The notes beneath the pieces were generated by a model that saw only the letters and a program-made list of their open reading frames with translations, was not told the origin of the DNA and searched no databases. 64,000 nucleotides of DNA, from assembly GCA_900088475.1 (NCBI GenBank), contig FLMG01001674.1:1-64000 (forward strand), given 5' to 3'. Numbering within the stretch: position 1 is the stretch's first letter; each line of letters begins with the position of its first letter. The position numbers and the translations under genes are program-made. The DNA comes from Hyphochytrium catenoides (lineage: Eukaryota; Protista; Hyphochytriomycota). Shown piece after piece: positions 41,713-58,200 of this stretch.

Positions 41713-43188
41713 TCACTCTGCCTCATGATTTTCAGGCTGCGACGCAATGGCTGTCTCTGTGGACCGTACCCTTGACTTGATAATAACACAGTCTTCTGGA
41801 TGACGGAAGCTTGAGTAGACGAGCTTCAGGACCATTAAAAAGATAGTGCAGCCGCGGTTAAGGCAGAAGTCTTTCAGTGCAAAGCTCAATCCCGGATTTG
41901 TTAAGCTCTTGCTGCTGCTCCCGTCTCCCAGTGATGCCGCGTACTCCCTGTCCTCCAACACGAAGCCATGCACGAGGTTCAGGCGATAGGGACGAAAGTT
42001 CTCTCCTAGTTCCACGTAGATAAAGGCAAGGGAAAGTGTGAACGCCACTAAGTTGAAGAGTTGTACATAACGAAGGCGCGGCCTCTCAGTAACGCTGAAG
42101 CTGTCATAGAAGAGGAAGACAGAGCAGAAGCCGCCAAATACTCCGAGACCACTGAGTGCGCTAAAGACTGAATGGCCTAAGAGAACAAAGTAGCTGCAGC
42201 TGAAGACAAACATCTCTCCCATCAGTAGATGGGTTTCATACACAGCTGCACAGCGCTTTACCATGGCCCAGTTCATGAGGGAAGTGAAGGTTAAGCACAG
42301 CCACGACACAGCTATCACAAAGATGCCAGCCAGGGCTCCTCTTAACGCAGAGCTACCTTCATCATCGTCATCCGTGATGTCAAGCCCAAGCTTCGGCCCA
42401 AAGCTCAGGTACAAGCCCGATATCCACGCCAGAGCACTGGTGATCCACATGCCCCACAGGTCAGAACGCCTGTTGCATCTCTTCTTCCACCAGAAGGCAG
42501 CATTACGCCCTAGAAGCCTTTCCATGACGGTGTCGTTGCTCTCCTCCAGCGACAGTTCAGTGTAGGGATAAGTAGCAAACAGAGCTTTGTACTGCTTTCT
42601 CGCTTCTTCCGGCGGCATCCTGCCTCGATGATCGTGAGGCGCCCATGACGCTGGTTGTGCCATTCTCTTACTTCTTCTATGCTTTTGTTGCAAGGCGCGC
42701 CGCTTGACTTGGACCACGCCGACCGTAGTACCTGCAAAGCTGCTGTCTTTCCTCGAGATCGCGCGAGGAACATCTCCTTCTGCAGCAGGGTGGCGAGGAG
42801 CTTTAGAGCTCTTATTGATACCACTGCCGCAGACCGCCAGAGTGGCAATGGCCAAACGTGACTCCGACGGCCGCGAAGAGCTTTCGTTTCCGCAGAGGAG
42901 AGAAGGCGTCAAGTCAGCGTTGCAGCAGCTCTTGATCAGAACAGTGCTGGCTGTGCTCGTAGTAGGGGCAGCGAGAGACAACAGACAAGAAGAGCGCCCG
43001 AGAACGCCCTCAACGGCTGCCGTGACCTCTTCTAAAACCTTTTTGTCACTGTCGTCCAGTTGAGGATTGCCTCTCAGGAGCACACTTAGCCTATGGCATA
43101 GCTGCTTGAGTTCTCTAGAAGACGGCGATAGGCTTGATTGGCCACTGTCAGAGATAGCTGCTTCGCTGCTCCTGCTAACTTTGATCAT
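41713..43188 (-). CDS. Uncharacterised intronless multi-pass membrane protein, paralogue 1 (491 aa)
   Basis: Long ORF with about 6 hydrophobic segments and strong motif conservation with paralogues 2 and 3. Confidence 0.9.
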   Translation of the reverse strand: MIKVSRSSEAAISDSGQSSLSPSSRELKQLCHRLSVLLRGNPQLDDSDKKVLEEVTAAVEGVLGRSSCLLSLAAPTTSTASTVLIKSCCNADLTPSLLCGNESSSRPSESRLAIATLAVCGSGINKSSKAPRHPAAEGDVPRAISRKDSSFAGTTVGVVQVKRRALQQKHRRSKRMAQPASWAPHDHRGRMPPEEARKQYKALFATYPYTELSLEESNDTVMERLLGRNAAFWWKKRCNRRSDLWGMWITSALAWISGLYLSFGPKLGLDITDDDDEGSSALRGALAGIFVIAVSWLCLTFTSLMNWAMVKRCAAVYETHLLMGEMFVFSCSYFVLLGHSVFSALSGLGVFGGFCSVFLFYDSFSVTERPRLRYVQLFNLVAFTLSLAFIYVELGENFRPYRLNLVHGFVLEDREYAASLGDGSSSKSLTNPGLSFALKDFCLNRGCTIFLMVLKLVYSSFRHPEDCVIIKSRVRSTETAIASQPENHEAE

Positions 43189-43972
43189 CTTCGTCCGTTG
43201 CTGACAGGTTAGTGGAGATAAGAGTCCATCGATCTCTCCGTAGATGTTGATGTGGGCTTAGGGCTGGACAATCATCACGCTGTCGAAGACAACCGAGAGA
43301 GAGAAGAAGATTTCAAGCAGTGCGATGATCCTATAACTGAGGGAAGAGGAAGAAGAAGAGAGATGGTGACTCTCCTTGCTCATTACGTTATGGGTCTGGT
43401 ATGCCGGGGCACAACCTGTCAAGATCGTGAACGCCCTACACTTGCCACACTTCCTTCTTCCGCAGCTGCTGGAAGAAACCTCGAGCGCAAAAGAAAGTGA
43501 CCAAGTGACCAATAGAACCTCGCTGTGCAAAGGTAGTAGCAGACTGGCTTGCAAGGACAGCTGAGCTAATCACTCCTGACCAGCAAGAGCCCATGCGGCA
43601 TCGAGAAGGATAGCAGACCAGGAGGAAGTAAGCCAACAAGGAAAGAGACAGCTGGTTGAGGGCGTTTGCTCCAGGCTTAACAGACTTTGGCGCGCGGGGA
43701 GCCAGAAGAAGCGATCTTCTATGATCCTCGCGTCGTGGCGTATTGACTGTTCTATGTAAAGTCATAGAAGAAGAAGAAGATGTCGCGACTACGGAGGAAG
43801 ATAACCGCCACTACTGGGCTCTTCCTCCTCCGTTTGTCTTGCGACTGACTAACGCCGCTTTGTCTCCTCCTGCGTCTCCTTCTCCTTGGTGCCACGACGC
43901 CCAAGTGGCGCCTCTCGGTTTGCCTTTGCTCTCTCTCTCTCTCTCTCTCCCTCCTCTCTTTCTCTCACTCCC

Positions 43973-44009
<37 letters not shown>

Positions 44010-44264
44010 GTCTCTGTCTCTCTCTCTCTTTTATATCCAGCATCGCTTGCCTTCCAAGAGAAGAGCTTGAGCAGAAAAACAGCAGGAAAAGTGGTGACAG
44101 TGATCAATGAGAAGAAAGAGAGACCACGCTGGCCGTCGCTCTGGAGGGATGTAGCAAGAAGAGGGAGAGGGAAGGAGAAAGAGAGAGAGAGAGAGGTGGG
44201 AGGGAGGAGAGAGAGACAGAGAGAGAAAGAAAGAGAGAGAGAGAGACAGAGAGTGAGAGACAGA

Positions 44265-44311
<47 letters not shown>

Positions 44312-45530
44312 GCCTTCTTGCTATCCCTCAACCGCCATTATCCCAGATGTCCGAAGATAAGAAATGTTGACCTGGTAGAGGGCCCCCTCCTTTATAATAA
44401 TGTTAGAAAAAGCCGATAATAATCTGAGTCGAGTGACCCGATTCACTAGATTAGGGATAATCTGATGATGATGAAACTGTTGTCAAACGTGTTGTCGAGG
44501 GGGAACAGAGGTGTGCAGTATAAGTATACCTGCATTACTTGTACTTAGAACGCGTGCTTGCCAGCCCTTACAAGACCTACCATACCACCAAGAACAAACG
44601 AAGCTGGTGCTCCTAGGATTTATACTTGTACTTGTACTTGTCCTTGCGTCCCAAGAGGAGGGAAGCGAGATCGTTCCAGCAGTTTTTCGGTCCGTTACAG
44701 AGGAGTCAGCGCTGTACGTGAGGCCTGCTTGTGATGCACTGAGGCTGAGGCTTCCTTCTGGGCTGAGGATGATGAGCGAGACTGTCAACTCAGGGAGAAC
44801 ACGAGGTGGGCGGTGGCTGCTGTGAGAGGAGAGGAGAGGAGGAGGGCGGCTTTGATGAGCACCACCGTGGGGAGAAGAGCTAGGGGCAGCAGCAGGAGCA
44901 ACAGCTGGTTGGGCTCTCTTCGTACTTCCCATCGATCGTGGTTGAGGGGCCCTTCTTCTTCTTTCTGAGGATGGGGCCCCGTCTACTTCGTCTTCTTCGA
45001 TCTGTGAGGTCAGTTGTCGGTCCTCGTCTTTTCTTCTCATCGACTTGTATGAGGGCAACTATATAGTCAAGAGACAAGAAGAAGGAGAGCAGAACTTAAA
45101 GAGAACGCGGTTGTTCTTCGCCAACAACCTACTAGACAGCTTCACCTCTGATGCACCGTCTGCTGGTGCTCTGCTTACTTAGACATGCAGCATGCTATAC
45201 AAAGAAGTTCGCCCTTTCTCACGTACTACCACGGCCTAGTTCTGGCTGCTCTTAGCCTTCCGTCCACTGTGTAGCAGGCAGCATGTTATCTTGCAGTGCT
45301 ATCGTTCCAAAAGTTGCTGCCTTCAATTTCTGACCGGACAAGTGACGGGCGACTCTAAGCGCTAGGACGACCAGCTGTCAAGCTGTTTCCTGCAAGCGTA
45401 GCGTGTCCGGCAGCAGGCAGCAGGGAGGAGGAGGAGAGCCGGCTGCTTGTTACAAGCGGTGCTTCCTCCTGATAGTGCCAAACAATAGGAGGAATCAAGG
45501 TTCTGGAGTGCACTGTTTTCTCCAAACACG

Positions 45531-46904
45531 ATGATTGCTGCTGCCAAGTGGATGGCAGAAGAGAAGGAGCCAGGTCTAGCACACGGTAGTACTTCCTGTG
45601 TAACATCTTCTTCCTCGTCAAAGTCTCCAGTGACTCAACTTTGTCAGCCTCTCGTCTCCTACCTCTACGGTCCGCGTCCGCCGCTGGATGACACGGCTAA
45701 GAATGCCCTTCGTGAAGTGGAAGCAGCCATAGAGGCCGCTTTAACATGCTCTACTAGTAACTACCCTGGTTCCTCTATTACTCCTGTTCCGATTGGAACA
45801 ACGAATAGCATCACCGCCTCTAGCCGCACTGCAGTGTCTGTACGGCTACAAAGCGCAGAGCAAAGTTCTCTTTCCGATCCTCCCTCACTATGCGACACTC
45901 CTTCCTACGGCTTCAGGGCAGGAGTGGTGAAAGTCAAGCAGTGCAAAGGGCAGGAGCATGGTCGAAGTGAACATGGGCCAGAGCAAAAGACAAGGTCCAA
46001 ACAAGAGAGGCTGTTGCCGCACAAGGCTCTATTTCCCACCTATCCTTACACAGAGCTGTCAGTGGAGGAGAGCAATGATACCGTGATGCATAAGCTACTG
46101 GGACGCAGAGCATGTGAATGGTGGCGGAGGCACAACAGAAAGAACTTTATCAAAGGCTTGTGGATAACCAGTGTCTTTGCCTGGCTTTCAGGCTTCTACT
46201 TGGGCTTCGGCCCGCTGCAGGTTCTTGGAGAGGATACCGTGGATGCGCTGCGAGGGGCGTTAGTAGCTGTGTTTGTTCTTGTGGTGCTCTGGCTCTGGCT
46301 CTCGGTCATTTCACTTATGAACTGGGCCATGGTAAAGCGCTGTGCCGCAGTCTATGATACTCATTTCCTTATGGCTGAGATGTTCTTCTTCAGCTGCAGT
46401 TACTTCATCCTTCTAGAGCATTCAGTACCTAGTGCGCTCACCGCGTGCGGAGTCTTCGGGGGCTTCTGCTGCATCTTTCTCCTCTATGACAGCTTTGGAG
46501 TGGCGGACAGGCCGCGCCTTCGCTATGTCCAGCTCTTTCATATGACAGCCTTCGCCATATTCTTGGTGCTAATCTATACAGAGGCAGGGACACGCGTTCG
46601 TCCATATCGCTTGGAGGTTGCCTCAGGCTTCAAGCTTGTGGAAGAAAGATCGAGAAAGAGCTGTGATAGTAGAAGCAGCTCTGACGGGGATCCGGAGTTA
46701 CTGGTGGCCGATAAGCTGAGCCTGTCGCTGAAGGGTTTCTGCCTTAATCGTGGCTGTACGATTCTTGTGCTGATGATGAAGCTTGTCTATTCAAGCTTTA
46801 AGCATCCTGACGACCTTCTTATCATCAGATCCCGTGTACGGTCGACAGACATAATCCACTCACCACCAGGTGCGTCAGCAGAAGCTTCATATGGGAGAAA
46901 GTAG
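45531..46904 (+). CDS. Uncharacterised intronless multi-pass membrane protein, paralogue 2 (457 aa)
   Basis: Shares TELS.EESNDTVM, SLMNWAMVKRCAAVY, YDSF, RPRLRYVQLF, FCLNRG and KLVYSSF.HP.D..II.SRVRS with the other two. Confidence 0.9.
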   Translation: MIAAAKWMAEEKEPGLAHGSTSCVTSSSSSKSPVTQLCQPLVSYLYGPRPPLDDTAKNALREVEAAIEAALTCSTSNYPGSSITPVPIGTTNSITASSRTAVSVRLQSAEQSSLSDPPSLCDTPSYGFRAGVVKVKQCKGQEHGRSEHGPEQKTRSKQERLLPHKALFPTYPYTELSVEESNDTVMHKLLGRRACEWWRRHNRKNFIKGLWITSVFAWLSGFYLGFGPLQVLGEDTVDALRGALVAVFVLVVLWLWLSVISLMNWAMVKRCAAVYDTHFLMAEMFFFSCSYFILLEHSVPSALTACGVFGGFCCIFLLYDSFGVADRPRLRYVQLFHMTAFAIFLVLIYTEAGTRVRPYRLEVASGFKLVEERSRKSCDSRSSSDGDPELLVADKLSLSLKGFCLNRGCTILVLMMKLVYSSFKHPDDLLIIRSRVRSTDIIHSPPGASAEASYGRK

Positions 46905-47385
46905 CGTAAACTTAACGAGCCACTTCAGCCAGTCCGACAGTGGTGGCCTGTCAAAGGAGTGACAAGAGAGAGGCCAACGAAGTACGAGAGAATTTGGAAA
47001 CATATGAACGGGCTGCGTGCCTGAGCAGCTACGCCATAGCATTGTGACCGGCCGACTGGACGAAGAGCGCACCTCTGCTAGGAGCCGGATCTATTGTTTC
47101 CCTCTGGGGCATAGCGCAATATTTATAGCAGCACAGTCAGATGGCTCCACTAGCCTCTTCTGATGCCGCCTAACTTTATCTGTAACCCTACTTCTTTTCT
47201 CTACCGCCTCTTTGATGGGCCTCTTCTTTGTCATAAGACCGACGAGGGTCCGTGGGCACAATTGGCAAAGGAGAGCCAGGGCAAAAAGAGGAGCACAGCC
47301 ACCAGCAGACTGGACACGTTAGCAGAGTCTATATTATATTTAGTAAGAACACCACCAGATCGGCTGGGATAGAGCAGACTCTTCA

Positions 47386-48846
47386 TCATTCACGTACTGT
47401 TAGTTGGCACAACCTTCTTTTCTCCGGGCCTCTCAGCGATACGGGCTGCAGGTTGTCATCTTTCTTCCCTTCAACTTTCTTGTCGATGGCGTGGCCATTG
47501 TGAACGCTTTCCTTCGCGCTTATCGCTACCTCTACGGACCTGACGCGTGACTTGATGATAAGACAGTCTTCAGGATATCTGAAGCTCGAGTAGACGAGCT
47601 TGACCATCATAAGGAAGATGGTGTATCCGCGGTTGAGACAGAAGTCCTTCATTGACAGGCTAAGCCTCGCGCTGTTTGACGGCCCACAGCTTGTTCTAGT
47701 GCTATCGCCTATACTATCACCATTACTGTTTGGTACACCATCGTAGACTAAGCCATCAAAGAGATCCAACCGATAGGGCTTGAAGCCATCCCCAACTTCG
47801 GCGTATATAAAGGCCAACGGAGCGATGAAACCCACCAGGTTGAATAGTTGAACATAGCGGAGGCGAGGTCTCTCGCTGATGGGAAAGCTGTCATAAAATA
47901 AGAAGACGCAACAGAAGCCCCCAAAGACTCCCAGACAGCCGAGGGCACCAAATAAGGAGTGACCGATGACGATAAAGCAACTGGAGCTGTAGAGAAACAT
48001 CTCCGCCATGAGAAAGTGCGTCTCGTATACCGCGGTGCACCGCTTCACCATAGCCCAATTCATAAGAGACGTGAGACCCAAGCACAGCCAGGAGACGGCC
48101 AGAACAAAGACACAGGCTAGAGGAATACGGAGCAAGCCGCTATTTCCCGCTTCAGCAGGGCCAAAGCTCAAATACATCCCGCTGACCCAAGCCAGAGCGC
48201 TCGTGGCTCCAAGTAAGATGATCTCGTATCTCTTCCTATGGTATCGTCGCCATAAGCGATGGACCTTGGCTCCCAGAAACTTGTGCATGACAGTGTCATT
48301 GCTCTCGTTCAAGGAGAGCTCCGTGCGTCGATAGGTAGGGAAGAGTGTCTTGTACTGCAGTCGTTCGCTCTCTTCACTGTCTGCTTGCGTTGCTAACGAT
48401 GAGTGTATTGTCTTCTTTTGCGCAGCACCACCACGGCGCTTGACCTTGACTTGCCCTGCACTGGAAGAGGGCGGACTTCTATTTACTAAGAATGCTGGCA
48501 AGCACGTTTTTCTGAATCCTTCCCTAGGAGACGTGATGGCTTTAGCGGGCACCGTCTGGTTACAGGCAGTCGTAGGGCTATGAAGCAGAGATAAATCGGC
48601 ACTGAGCCTTACAAAGTTTGGGGAAGGAGAAGGCGGAGACAGTGGTACTACTGGGGCCGATGAGGTTCGTTGAAGTAGGTCATCAATGGCTTCTCTCGTT
48701 TCGTGCAAGATATTGCTGGCGCTATCGTCTACCTGAGGGCTATCCCGAAGAAAGGACAGCAGCGGTTGACAGAGTTGACCCACCCTGATTGACGGCGGAC
48801 AAGCCGAGGAATATTTAAAGTGTTCACTGCCTGGCGTGTGCTGCAT
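47386..48846 (-). CDS. Uncharacterised intronless multi-pass membrane protein, paralogue 3 (486 aa)
   Basis: Same conserved motifs and hydrophobic pattern as paralogues 1 and 2. Confidence 0.9.
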   Translation of the reverse strand: MQHTPGSEHFKYSSACPPSIRVGQLCQPLLSFLRDSPQVDDSASNILHETREAIDDLLQRTSSAPVVPLSPPSPSPNFVRLSADLSLLHSPTTACNQTVPAKAITSPREGFRKTCLPAFLVNRSPPSSSAGQVKVKRRGGAAQKKTIHSSLATQADSEESERLQYKTLFPTYRRTELSLNESNDTVMHKFLGAKVHRLWRRYHRKRYEIILLGATSALAWVSGMYLSFGPAEAGNSGLLRIPLACVFVLAVSWLCLGLTSLMNWAMVKRCTAVYETHFLMAEMFLYSSSCFIVIGHSLFGALGCLGVFGGFCCVFLFYDSFPISERPRLRYVQLFNLVGFIAPLAFIYAEVGDGFKPYRLDLFDGLVYDGVPNSNGDSIGDSTRTSCGPSNSARLSLSMKDFCLNRGYTIFLMMVKLVYSSFRYPEDCLIIKSRVRSVEVAISAKESVHNGHAIDKKVEGKKDDNLQPVSLRGPEKRRLCQLTVRE

Positions 48847-53680: not shown

Positions 53681-54640
53681 ATGGACGCCTGGGTGACAAA
53701 GGCTGGAGAGCACTCGCTCCAGCGGCAGCCCATTCCCACGTTGAGTGAACGCGATGTTCTTGTCCGCCTCAAGACCGCGGCGATGAACCCTGTCGACCAT
53801 AAGGTAACCGCAGGCGGAGCTGACAATGCCATCCTGGGCTTTGACGGCGTTGGAACGATAGAGAAGCTTGGCCCCAAGGCCGTGCTGGGCTTTAAAGAGG
53901 GCGATGAAGTCTGGTTTGCTGGCAACCTCAAGCGGAATGGCTGCTATGCCCAATATGTTGCCATAGATGAGCGCATTATCTCTAAGAAACCCAAGAAGTT
54001 TGATGCTAAGCAATCCGCTGGCTTTCCATTGGTAACGCTTACAGCCTGGGAAGCCTTCGAGGAGGGAATGGGCATCACAACGCTGGACTCAGGGAAGACC
54101 ATGCTCGTTATCGGTGGAGCGGGAGGCCTTGGAAGTGTTGCCATCCAAGTCGCTAAGCAGCAATTTAACCTCTTCGTCATCGCCACCGCTTCCAGGCCAG
54201 AAAGTAGCGCTTGGTGCACCAAGATGGGTGCAGACCTTGTCATTGACCATACAAAGGACCTTCTTCCACAGTTGGGGGACCACCGAGTGGACTATCTCTT
54301 CTGCACGGAGGACAAGTCTAGGACATGGGACCAGTGGGGCGATATCATGAATGTCAACGGGAAGATTCAGCTGATCACGGCTCCAGACAGGCCAGTCTCG
54401 CTCGAGCCCTTCTTCTACAAGCGTATTAGCGTGGGCTTAGAGCTGATGTTCACAAGGCCTATGTTTGACGTGGAGCAGGAGAAGCAGGGTCACATTCTTA
54501 AGAGGATGGCCCACTTGGTGGATGCAGGACGCATCGTCCCCGTTGATAACTATCATTTTGACTTCAAAGAGCTGAAGAAAGGGTATGAGCAGATCAAGAC
54601 TGGAAAAAGCATTGGAAAGATCATCTTCACTGGATTTTAG
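53681..54640 (+). CDS. MDR-family NADPH:quinone oxidoreductase / zinc-type alcohol dehydrogenase-like protein, intronless, bacterial-type
   Basis: MNPVDHKV, ILGFDGVG, FKEGDEVWFAG, PLVTLTAWEA, VIGGAGGLGS, IATASRPES, MGADLVIDH, ELMFTRPMF and GKSIGKII. No zinc-ligand Cys cluster. Confidence 0.93.
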   Translation: MDAWVTKAGEHSLQRQPIPTLSERDVLVRLKTAAMNPVDHKVTAGGADNAILGFDGVGTIEKLGPKAVLGFKEGDEVWFAGNLKRNGCYAQYVAIDERIISKKPKKFDAKQSAGFPLVTLTAWEAFEEGMGITTLDSGKTMLVIGGAGGLGSVAIQVAKQQFNLFVIATASRPESSAWCTKMGADLVIDHTKDLLPQLGDHRVDYLFCTEDKSRTWDQWGDIMNVNGKIQLITAPDRPVSLEPFFYKRISVGLELMFTRPMFDVEQEKQGHILKRMAHLVDAGRIVPVDNYHFDFKELKKGYEQIKTGKSIGKIIFTGF

Positions 54641-55238: not shown

Positions 55239-58200
55239 TTACTCGCTCCAGCGCGAGTTGGAAGCAACTTTCTCCTCCTCAGCTGACAAAGCCGGAGAAG
55301 CTGAGTTTATTCTCTGGACACATCGCTGATGGTGAGCTCCCTGCTCTCTGTGCCGCTGCTTAGGAGGGAACTTGTTAATCGTTGCGATCAGCTCATTCAC
55401 ACGAAGCGGCTTGGTCACATATTCGTCCTATGATGAGAGAGGAAGAGAGAAAAGATTGGTATTAGAAGGTCAGGGGTCATGATGATAGAAGGAAAGTATG
55501 GAGGTCACTAGGTTGACAAAAGGTAAAAATCTATGGGGTAGTACAGAAGCAGTCACGATAAGTGAAGAAGACATCCAGGGCTAAACAGCGGTAGACACTT
55601 CAATCTTCTTACCATGCCCGCAGCGACGCATTTCTCCCTGTCACCAATCATGGCATGCGCTGTGAGCGCAATGATAGGCACTCTCTCCCAGACTTCCTGC
55701 CCTCTCCTAGTGGCATTCTCCTGCTCCCACTTCCTGATTCTCTGGGTGGCCTCAAAGCCGCCCATGATAGGCATCTGCACGTCCATCAGCACCAGGTCGT
55801 AATCGCCCATCTGGAACATTTCAACCGCGATTTGTCCGTTTGAGGCAATCTGAACCTTGTGACCGAACTTCTCGAGCACTCTAACCGCAAGCTTCTGGTT
55901 GACTACATTATCCTCGGCCAGCAGGATGTGCAGCGGAGTAGGAGGCGTAGAAGCGTTTGCAGGCAGCGAGAGTTGCAGCTCGAGGGCCGGCAGAAGAGCA
56001 TTGAGTACGTCTGGCAGGGTTGGAGTCACAGTCAGCGACTGGATGCCCAGCTCAAAGCACTTCTTCATGAGCAGAGGCGGATGCACCGGTGAGAAGAGAA
56101 CCATTGGGATGTAGCGCAGATATGGGGACTGGCGCAGAGGAGGGATGGACGAGAGCTTGGACACTGTTGGCAGCGCAGCAGGAAAGAGGAAACTTAGAAC
56201 TGCAGGATACCATCATAGAAGAGACTCTTGAACTAACTGCAGGCCCTGGGACTCTCTACCCGTCATTTCTCTCTCTATCTCTCCAGCCATTCTGAATTTT
56301 CAAGGCTATCAAGGCTATTTCCCTGCTGGTGCTTACCTATGGCCACGTCGAACTTGACACCCTTGAACTTCCCTTCTTCTTCCCACTGAATAGCCTCCCT
56401 TGCCGTGCGGACCCTGATCGGCCGCAACTTGAGCGCTTCAAGATGCTGGAGCATGAGAGAAGCCATGGTCTCTCGGTCTCTGTGAACCCATTCGTTCTTG
56501 GTAATAACCTCTCTATGGGGAGGTTTCTTTGCATCAGCTCTGTCCCTCTTTCTTCTCTTCCTCTTTCTCTTTTCCTTGTCAGTTCCATATGGCTCCTCGC
56601 CAGCTTCTCCTCCTGGTTGAGCGCCTTCTTCTGCCTCATCAACCTTCTCATCCTCGCTTCTCTCTTGCTCAGAAGCCATGTCCTCGTCATCATCACCTGG
56701 TTGCTCCTCCTCCTGCGTTACCGTTCCAATCTCCATCTCGTCCTCCGGTATGTCACAATGGCCAGAGAGAGACAGGAAGGGAGAAACAGGCTCATCCTCT
56801 TCTTCATCCTCTCCATCCACAAGTAGGATCCATCTTCCAGTGTAAGGGATCATCTTCTGCTCCATGAGGAGATTGATGTCAGCGTTGATGTTGACATTGT
56901 TGCCCACGTAGATGGCAGAGAGCTCCTTTCCTTTCTCGCCTACCCTCTTTCGCCCATCTGCTCCCCCTATCACTGCACAGCCGCCACTAGTCTTAGCTAG
57001 CGCGGACGAGACACAAGGTGGCTCGAACGGAACGGATGAAGGTAGCGCGAGCGCCGTGGAGGCGGGTGATGCGCAGCTCTTATTCTCCGTAACTTTGACT
57101 GTGAAGTAGAAGCGTGATCCCTCTCCATACTTAGATCTGACCCACAGCCGGCCGCCCATCAGAGCAACAAGCCGCTTTGAGATGCTTAGACCAAGCCCCG
57201 TACCGCCATACTTGCGCGTGGTAGAGCCTGTGCCACGGATGTAAAGGTTAAGAAGGTGTTTGGCCAGTATAGTCGCTAGGTGTCTTACCGTCTGCCTGAC
57301 AGAAAGTGTCGAAGATGACGTGCGCCTTGTCTTCAGGAATGCCAATGCCGGTATCACTGACGCAGAGAGTGAGCTCCAGAGAGCTTTCCTCTTCCGTACC
57401 GTTTTCATCAATCAGCCTCACGCACTTGGCGCTGACCACAATCTCGCCTTCAGATGTGAATTTGACGGCATTGCCCACCAAGTTCGTGATGACCTAGAGA
57501 GTAAACTTGTTAGAGAAAAGCTTCCCTCGCCAGCTCATTTATCAATCCACGCACCTGTCTCAGTCGAAGAGGGTCGCCGATCAGTTGGTCAGGAATGGCA
57601 GGATTGATGTTATAGATCAAGTTCAGGTTCTTCTGATGAGCCTTAGGAGCCATCGTCTTCAGCATTGAGAAGACAGAAGAGCGAAGAGAGAACGGGATGC
57701 GCTCGATATTCAGCTTGCCAGCCTCGACTGCAGGATTAAGAGGAAAACAATGGAGAAAGGAAGCAGACATCGGTCAGAACTGCCCAGGTAACGATTCAAC
57801 ATGGGGAGACAAGGACTTACTCTTGGAGATATCGAGAATGTCATCGATGATTGTCAGTAGAGAGTTGGCAAGAGAACTGACTGTCATGAGATTCTCCCTC
57901 TGCTGACGGGTGAGCTCTGTTTCCAGAGTCAAGTTCGTCATACCGATAATGCCATTCATCGGGGTTCGGATCTAAGTGATAATGATGGTCATGCAGAGAG
58001 CACGGCCTTAGCAAACCAATTAAGAAGCCCCAGGCGAGATCATTTTGCTTCTTACCTCGTGAGACATGTTAGCCAAGAACTCTGACTTGCTTCTGTTCGC
58101 AGTCTCTGCCGCCTCCCTTGCCAGCCTATTCTTATGAATACTCTCACGCAGATTGTAGACCATTTGGTTGATCTTCGTCTTTAGCGAGTCCATTTCACCC

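Follow-up and report, generated by a model that had tools for sequence, protein, structure and literature searches.

Otopetrins (OTOP1-3 and the invertebrate Otop-like proteins; Pfam PF03189) have been described as conserved from nematodes to humans and as unrelated to other channels (PMC12549899). An otopetrin subunit is made up of two homologous halves with six helices each. Helices 2 to 6 of a half form a barrel, to which helix 1 is peripheral, and each barrel contains a conserved Gln-Asn/Asp-Tyr constriction triad (PMC6483595). The FYR motif and, at the interface between the barrels, a conserved Glu and an Asp-His pair are further marks of these proteins (PMC6483595). In the literature, we found no report of otopetrin-like proteins outside animals. 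Here we describe three neighboring genes of Hyphochytrium catenoides (Hyphochytriomycota), located on contig FLMG01001674.1 of assembly GCA_900088475.1. The stretch analyzed, referred to as the window, comprises 64,000 nucleotides (positions 1 to 64,000 of the forward strand). Sequence comparisons show that the three genes are intact, old paralogues, kept under purifying selection, of a rare and unnamed family of predicted integral membrane proteins. We tentatively propose that their products may be half-size subunits of an otopetrin-like double-barrel ion pathway, a reading that we regard as a real possibility, if somewhat short of an even chance.

An old cluster of intact paralogues

A first-pass annotation, made by a model from the letters of the sequence and a list of its open reading frames (ORFs), had proposed an old local expansion at this locus. 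The ORF listing bears out its three ORFs of 457-491 amino acids with their positions and orientations, genes 1 and 2 being divergent and genes 2 and 3 convergent:

41713..43188, minus strand: paralogue 1, complete single-exon gene, 491 amino acids; envelope of the family hidden Markov model (HMM) at residues 194-491
42997..43113, minus strand: N-terminal helical hairpin of paralogue 1, approximately residues 26-64, from the three-way alignment
41716..42609, minus strand: conserved core of paralogue 1, modeled by AlphaFold2 as a juxtamembrane strand, amphipathic helices, six transmembrane helices, and a C-terminal strand
41872..42015, minus strand: variable outer loop between helices 5 and 6 of paralogue 1, with the lowest conservation and partly with a predicted local distance difference test score (pLDDT) <50
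45531..46904, plus strand: paralogue 2, complete single-exon gene, 457 amino acids; hairpin at approximately 45627-45746, core at 46002-46901
47386..48846, minus strand: paralogue 3, complete single-exon gene, 486 amino acids; hairpin at approximately 48667-48786, core at 47443-48372

According to tblastn, the 64-kb window contains exactly three copies of the gene, all within 7 kb, in agreement with a local expansion. The paralogues are 43-46% identical to each other over their full length and 58-60% identical in the core. Within the core, 75-78% of the synonymous sites differ, which amounts to saturation, compared to 26-31% of the non-synonymous sites. Because the synonymous sites are saturated and non-synonymous differences are few, the trio must consist of old duplicates that have been under purifying selection. 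A comparison of the two kinds of sites, in the spirit of the dN/dS test that the first-pass annotation had suggested, indicates constraint; with dS saturated, no ratio is given. The three ORFs align colinearly with their homologues all the way from the hairpin to the C-terminal strand, and hence the coding regions lack introns, as had been noted. The accompanying remark that most neighboring genes differ in this respect was checked only in part, and one neighbor, an alcohol dehydrogenase (ADH)-like ORF (53681-54640), is a single ORF as well.

That the three genes are unexpressed relics or chance ORFs is hardly credible. All three frames are intact over 457-491 codons and have kept the family-wide motifs. 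The length of the ORFs, their homologues in other organisms, and the fact that non-synonymous differences in the core (0.26-0.31) are far below synonymous ones (0.75-0.78) exclude chance ORFs.

Relatives in oomycetes and in sequencing-run assemblies

An exhaustive HMMER search of 1.84 billion cluster representatives, which used a core profile made from four sequences, retrieved 16 relatives at E<=0.001, 13 of which scored at E<=1e-10. All named relatives are from Saprolegniales oomycetes, namely Aphanomyces astaci, A. cochlioides, A. euteiches, Thraustotheca clavata, Achlya hypogyna, and Saprolegnia diclina, with one cluster or entry per named species in our searches. These entries are labelled "hypothetical protein" or "Transmembrane protein" (SDRG_01679, ACHHYP_05071, THRCLA_09534, H257_12484, AC1031_019591, and AeMF1_011100). 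The remaining relatives were found on assembled contigs (Logan contigs) of four sequencing runs (SRR28521184, SRR28521185, SRR28521203, and SRR32051690). Of the five inspected contigs that carry relatives, three (L002, L003, and L005) terminate in the (CT)n/(GA)n tracts also seen in the window, which suggests that these sequences stem from protists related to the window organism. A word-index protein search with a single protein yielded one match, P0001 (53% identity), which is the closest protein to paralogue 2 outside the window; the same kind of search with the family profile yielded six matches. A literature search found no paper that names SDRG_01679, H257_12484, THRCLA_09534, ACHHYP_05071, or the SRA runs.

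The Saprolegniales proteins are homologous to the window proteins over the entire core (24-27% identity at 93% coverage, with E-values of 1e-76 to 1e-94 against the family profile) and possess the same motifs, six-helix core, and hairpin at the N-terminus. Five motifs, PYTELS..ESN.TVM, SLMNW, YDSFP...R, FCLNRG, and DCVIIKSRVR, are invariant in the trio and form the consensus of 14 members. With the family HMM, the window proteins obtain domain E-values of 2e-119, 6e-116, and 2e-118, values that are circular, as their cores are among the 14 sequences from which the HMM was built. Taken as a whole, the sequence comparisons show the window trio to be members of one unnamed six-helix family together with the Saprolegniales hypothetical proteins and the proteins on the Logan contigs. 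The loci differ in their organization: at the only oomycete locus that we examined, S. diclina SDRG_01679, the gene is spliced and has unrelated housekeeping genes as neighbors, whereas the window trio is clustered and intronless.

No Pfam family matched the three window proteins at E<=1, and nothing relevant was found for ten relatives or for 19 members of the family at E<=10. Sequence and profile searches of the PDB (E<=10) returned noise only. In ESM Atlas feature searches, paralogue 2 gave weak leads to unnamed or unrelated clusters and the two-module relative P0008 gave nothing usable. The view that the proteins match no named family thus stands, with Pfam empty even at E<=10, but the family has been seen before in the form of hypothetical-protein orthologues from Saprolegnia, Achlya, Thraustotheca, and Aphanomyces in GenBank/UniProt.

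A predicted six-helix module and its N-terminal hairpin

The proteins begin with an N-terminal helical hairpin of approximately 40 residues, which is followed by a disordered Ser/Pro-rich linker, a short conserved juxtamembrane segment, and the six-helix transmembrane module. For the core of paralogue 1, AlphaFold2 produced a model with a pLDDT of 79.3 and a predicted template modeling score (pTM) of 0.75 from an alignment of 14 sequences. Its six long helices (residues 49-71, 85-112, 125-144, 149-167, 177-199, and 246-270 in core numbering, which is also used below) agree with the approximately six hydrophobic helices anticipated from the sequence, and short strands were predicted with low confidence at both ends of the core and in the loop before helix 6. 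The mean number of Lys plus Arg residues per segment alternates family-wide: the N-terminal segment has 7.7, loops 1-2 and 3-4 have 0.1 each, loops 2-3 and 4-5 have 1.6 each, and the C-terminal segment has 3.2; loop 5-6 is long and mixed. By the positive-inside rule, this alternation places both ends of the module in the cytoplasm and the variable loop of 33-59 amino acids outside. The predicted topology thus shows a cytosolic hairpin and a six-helix module whose ends are both cytoplasmic and whose variable loop before helix 6 faces outward.

Conservation is unevenly distributed over this architecture. In the three-way alignment, all motifs listed by the first-pass annotation are invariant columns (QLC..L...L......DD.....L.E...A....L in the hairpin, V.VK, K.LF.TY..TELS..ESNDTVM, SLMNWAMVKRC, FGGFC, YDSF, RPRLRYVQLF, PYRL, FCLNRG, and KLVYSSF..P.D..II.SRVRS). 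The invariant hairpin residues of the trio are Q29, L30, C31, L34, L38, D45, D46, L52, E54, A58, and L63 (numbering of paralogue 1). Variability is greatest in the loop that precedes the last helix, which has a column conservation of 0.33 over its 33-59 amino acids, so that the alignment and the per-column conservation agree with the postulated conserved core and with a variable outer loop. Across the family, Asn114, Asp170, and Ser280 are invariant. Asn114 (in SLMNW) ends helix 2, Tyr169-Asp170 are located just past helix 4, and Asn252-Arg253 open helix 6. Other residues conserved family-wide are Gly35, Arg177 (nearly invariant), Tyr266, Cys275, and Ser280-Arg281, and Glu133 in helix 3 is present in 12 of 14 sequences. 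The hairpin also opens P0002 to P0005, P0011, P0012, P0014, P0015, and P0027 to P0030, a set that includes oomycete members. One of these, P0011 of Aphanomyces astaci, has a long Ser/Thr/Pro-rich C-terminal tail.

The location of these residues could also indicate catalysis. In a membrane-embedded enzyme or lipid handler, such as a transferase, hydrolase, or scramblase, a cluster of Asn, Asp, Arg, and Ser near the cytoplasmic surface would form the active site. Asn114, Asp170, Ser280, and the near-invariant Arg177 are indeed situated at cytoplasmic helix ends or in the C-terminal strand, a place that catalytic residues occupy in many membrane enzymes. We consider such a function quite unlikely.

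Repeated fusion of two modules

At least six relatives (P0002, P0006, P0007, P0008, P0010, and P0013) contain two complete modules within one uninterrupted ORF, and for five of these fusions (all but P0010) the protein was confirmed as an exact translation from the fetched contigs. The Asn of SLMNW and the Asp of YDSF are invariant in both halves of every two-module protein. In a maximum-likelihood tree of 26 modules (branch support is given as pairs of values), at least three independent fusions can be distinguished. The two halves of P0002 are sisters (99/99), as expected after a recent fusion. P0007 and P0013 group by half, N-terminal with N-terminal (100/99) and C-terminal with C-terminal (100/100), indicating an old fusion, and P0008 and P0010 form a group of their own (97/96). 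The window paralogues and P0001 constitute a clade with support of 100/100, in which P0001 is the sister of paralogue 2 (97/90). Hence, the duplications in the window are older than the split from the organism represented by SRR28521184. This nesting of a protein from another organism inside the window clade, like the synonymous saturation, supports an old expansion. The SRR28521184 organism has single- and double-module members together.

In P0002 (contig L002, positions 185-2293, SRR28521184), two nearly complete gene copies are fused in frame, head to tail. Approximately 25 residues past the C-terminal strand of the first copy, the second copy keeps its Met-Asp-Thr-Ser-Thr-Val start and its own hairpin. 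This sequence gives the impression that the tandem fusion took place very recently.

The fusions bear on the arrangement of the modules in the membrane. With both ends inside, a parallel arrangement is the only one possible, and the repeated independent fusion of modules with this topology indicates that they stand side by side and parallel in the working protein. The modules thus probably act in parallel pairs, and single-module proteins such as the window trio would then be at least dimers. The hairpin is present in the single-module members and absent from the old fusions P0008, P0010, and P0013. Its absence from old fusions fits a role of the hairpin in assembly, without proving it.

Comparison of folds and a candidate ion pathway

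Modeling and fold searches had been suggested by the first-pass annotation as a check. For the single module, they furnished the six-helix model described above and no convincing match: the best Foldseek hit in the PDB had an E-value of 0.05, and template modeling (TM) scores in an ESM Atlas fold search were <=0.33. The two-module protein P0008 was modeled from 19 sequences with a pLDDT of 72.6 and a pTM of 0.68. In Foldseek comparisons, this model matched mouse OTOP2 with a probability of 0.92-1.00 and TM scores of 0.34-0.46 in a loose fit with a root-mean-square deviation (rmsd) of 6-8 Å. Twelve-helix major-facilitator transporters in the same list reached TM scores of 0.11-0.21.

Several results weigh against an otopetrin-like nature of the family. 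The Pfam Otopetrin model was not matched by the window trio at E<=1 or by 19 family members at E<=10, and profile searches of the PDB (E<=10) brought up no otopetrin chain. Language-model searches yielded either weak leads to unnamed or unrelated clusters or nothing usable. The otopetrin match itself has a large rmsd and TM scores <0.5, and the structure models were built on only 14-19 sequences. Finally, otopetrins have twelve helices per chain, and the window proteins have one six-helix module each; two modules occur only in the fused relatives from other organisms. Membership of the window proteins in the otopetrin family is therefore not established, by sequence or by the number of helices in a single chain. 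Of the two possibilities raised by the first-pass annotation, a channel-like protein is weakly supported by the otopetrin-like two-module model and lacks support at the sequence level, and nothing specific was found in favor of a receptor.

The proteins could nevertheless be membrane receptors, sensors, or scaffolds with a fold of their own and no permeation pathway, in which the outer loop would bind ligands and the conserved cytosolic face (the hairpin, the ESN.TVM motif, and the SRVR strand) would signal. Such a role would account for an outer loop that is the most variable part of proteins whose cytosolic segments are among the most conserved. The hairpin and the long disordered linker resemble a docking or regulatory arm, and no confident fold match to any channel was obtained. 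However, the conserved charged and polar residues in helices or at their ends, including the Glu of helix 3, Asn-Arg of helix 6, and the Asn and Asp found in both halves of the fusions, are more typical of a polar pathway or an active site. Moreover, the repeated fusion to twelve helices and the whole-length match to an otopetrin would be left unexplained. A receptor or scaffold thus appears unlikely.

If the window proteins are half-size subunits of a double-barrel pathway, they would form homo- or heterodimers, perhaps by means of the hairpin at the N-terminus, and each pair would be a twelve-helix unit like one otopetrin subunit. The polar residues conserved throughout the family would form the lining or the gate of a polar path taken by protons, some other ion, or a small solute. 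Candidates are the Asn of SLMNW at the end of helix 2, the Glu of helix 3, the Tyr-Asp of YDSF after helix 4, the Arg before helix 5, the Asn-Arg of LNRG at the start of helix 6, and the Tyr of helix 6. This function is suggested by the conserved Asn, Glu, Asp, Arg, and Tyr, which are situated within helices 2-6 or at their ends. What sets the paralogues apart would be the variable outer loop.

A more specific version of this model, which we find doubtful, is that the proteins are free-standing half-otopetrins, that is, single six-helix barrel subunits of non-animal eukaryotes that dimerize into the double barrel known from animals. In this case, the natural fusions in the relatives would replay the duplication and fusion behind the twelve-helix otopetrins, and a half-size, dimer-forming protist relative would show how the double barrel originated. 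The otopetrin fold, and perhaps the proton channel function, would then reach beyond animals to stramenopile protists and to water moulds pathogenic to fish and crayfish. Such proteins would also offer a minimal one-barrel system for the question of which barrel, or which interface, conducts, a point that the otopetrin structure papers have left open. Even if the likeness to otopetrins fails, the family is a well-conserved group of membrane proteins with members in Saprolegnia and Aphanomyces, unusually clear evidence for pairing, and no name, domain model, or literature.

Genomic neighborhood

The paralogues are separated by two spacers:

43189..45530, no strand: divergent spacer of 2.3 kb between paralogues 1 and 2, with a (CT)n tract (43929-44032) facing a (GA)n tract (44149-44313) and with inverted repeats I3-I15
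46905..47385, no strand: convergent spacer of 481 bp between the 3' ends of paralogues 2 and 3

The divergent spacer is a putative shared promoter or 5' untranslated region of paralogues 1 and 2 and has no match in Rfam. Its (CT)n/(GA)n tracts, which stand approximately 130-200 bp apart, give rise to a spurious ORF of 205 amino acids (43743-44360). Upstream of paralogue 2, the spacer also contains a Ser/Pro/Ala/Arg-rich ORF of 191 amino acids with a TTG start (44483-45058, minus strand), which probably does not represent a gene.

In positions 1-41000 of the window, GC skew and AT skew computed in 2-kb bins alternate strongly (reaching approximately 0.35 and 0.5, respectively), and long ORFs are few. 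From 41700 to 64000, the skew is near zero, the GC content is slightly higher (0.50-0.53), and several single-ORF genes are present, so that this part looks like an intron-poor gene neighborhood. The single ORF at 53681-54640 (plus strand) encodes a zinc-type alcohol dehydrogenase or quinone reductase (Pfam ADH_N and ADH_zinc_N). Its best matches share only 44-45% identity with it and come from bacteria, a chytrid, Acrasis, and dinoflagellate-type entries, with no close eukaryotic orthologue seen among them. Two adjoining ORFs on the minus strand (55553-56164 and 56275-57411) contain a response-regulator receiver domain and a histidine-kinase ATPase domain and are probably one hybrid histidine kinase split by an intron or a frame change.

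A clustered and intronless set of genes, in a part of the window that differs from the left part in skew and slightly higher GC, might have been carried in by a mobile element or belong to a giant-virus segment that has integrated. This explanation is very improbable and largely refuted by other features of the locus and the family. The GC content at third codon positions is 0.55-0.59 in the trio and matches that of the neighboring dehydrogenase, histidine-kinase, and receiver-domain ORFs (0.56-0.66). Repeat analysis found no terminal or long terminal repeats flanking the trio, and the only DNA repeats that join the genes are their own coding cores. Relatives were found neither in IMG/VR and JGI metagenome contigs, searched with motif patterns from the four closest sequences and tblastn, nor among viral folds in BFVD. 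Furthermore, the S. diclina orthologue is spliced and lies among ordinary genes, and the module tree fits long vertical descent.

Comparison with otopetrins

Any resemblance between the family and the otopetrins is weak and lies in the predicted fold of the two-module relative P0008, which was compared by overall scores. The window proteins differ from otopetrins in being half-size, with one six-helix unit per chain and no detectable sequence similarity, and in carrying an N-terminal helical hairpin and a long disordered linker. Their family motifs are SLMNW, YDSF, LNRG, and SRVR, whereas otopetrins have Gln-Asn-Tyr triads and the FYR motif, which was not seen in the family. The distributions differ as well, otopetrins being proteins of animals from nematodes to humans (PMC12549899) and the family described here having been seen only in stramenopile-type protists.

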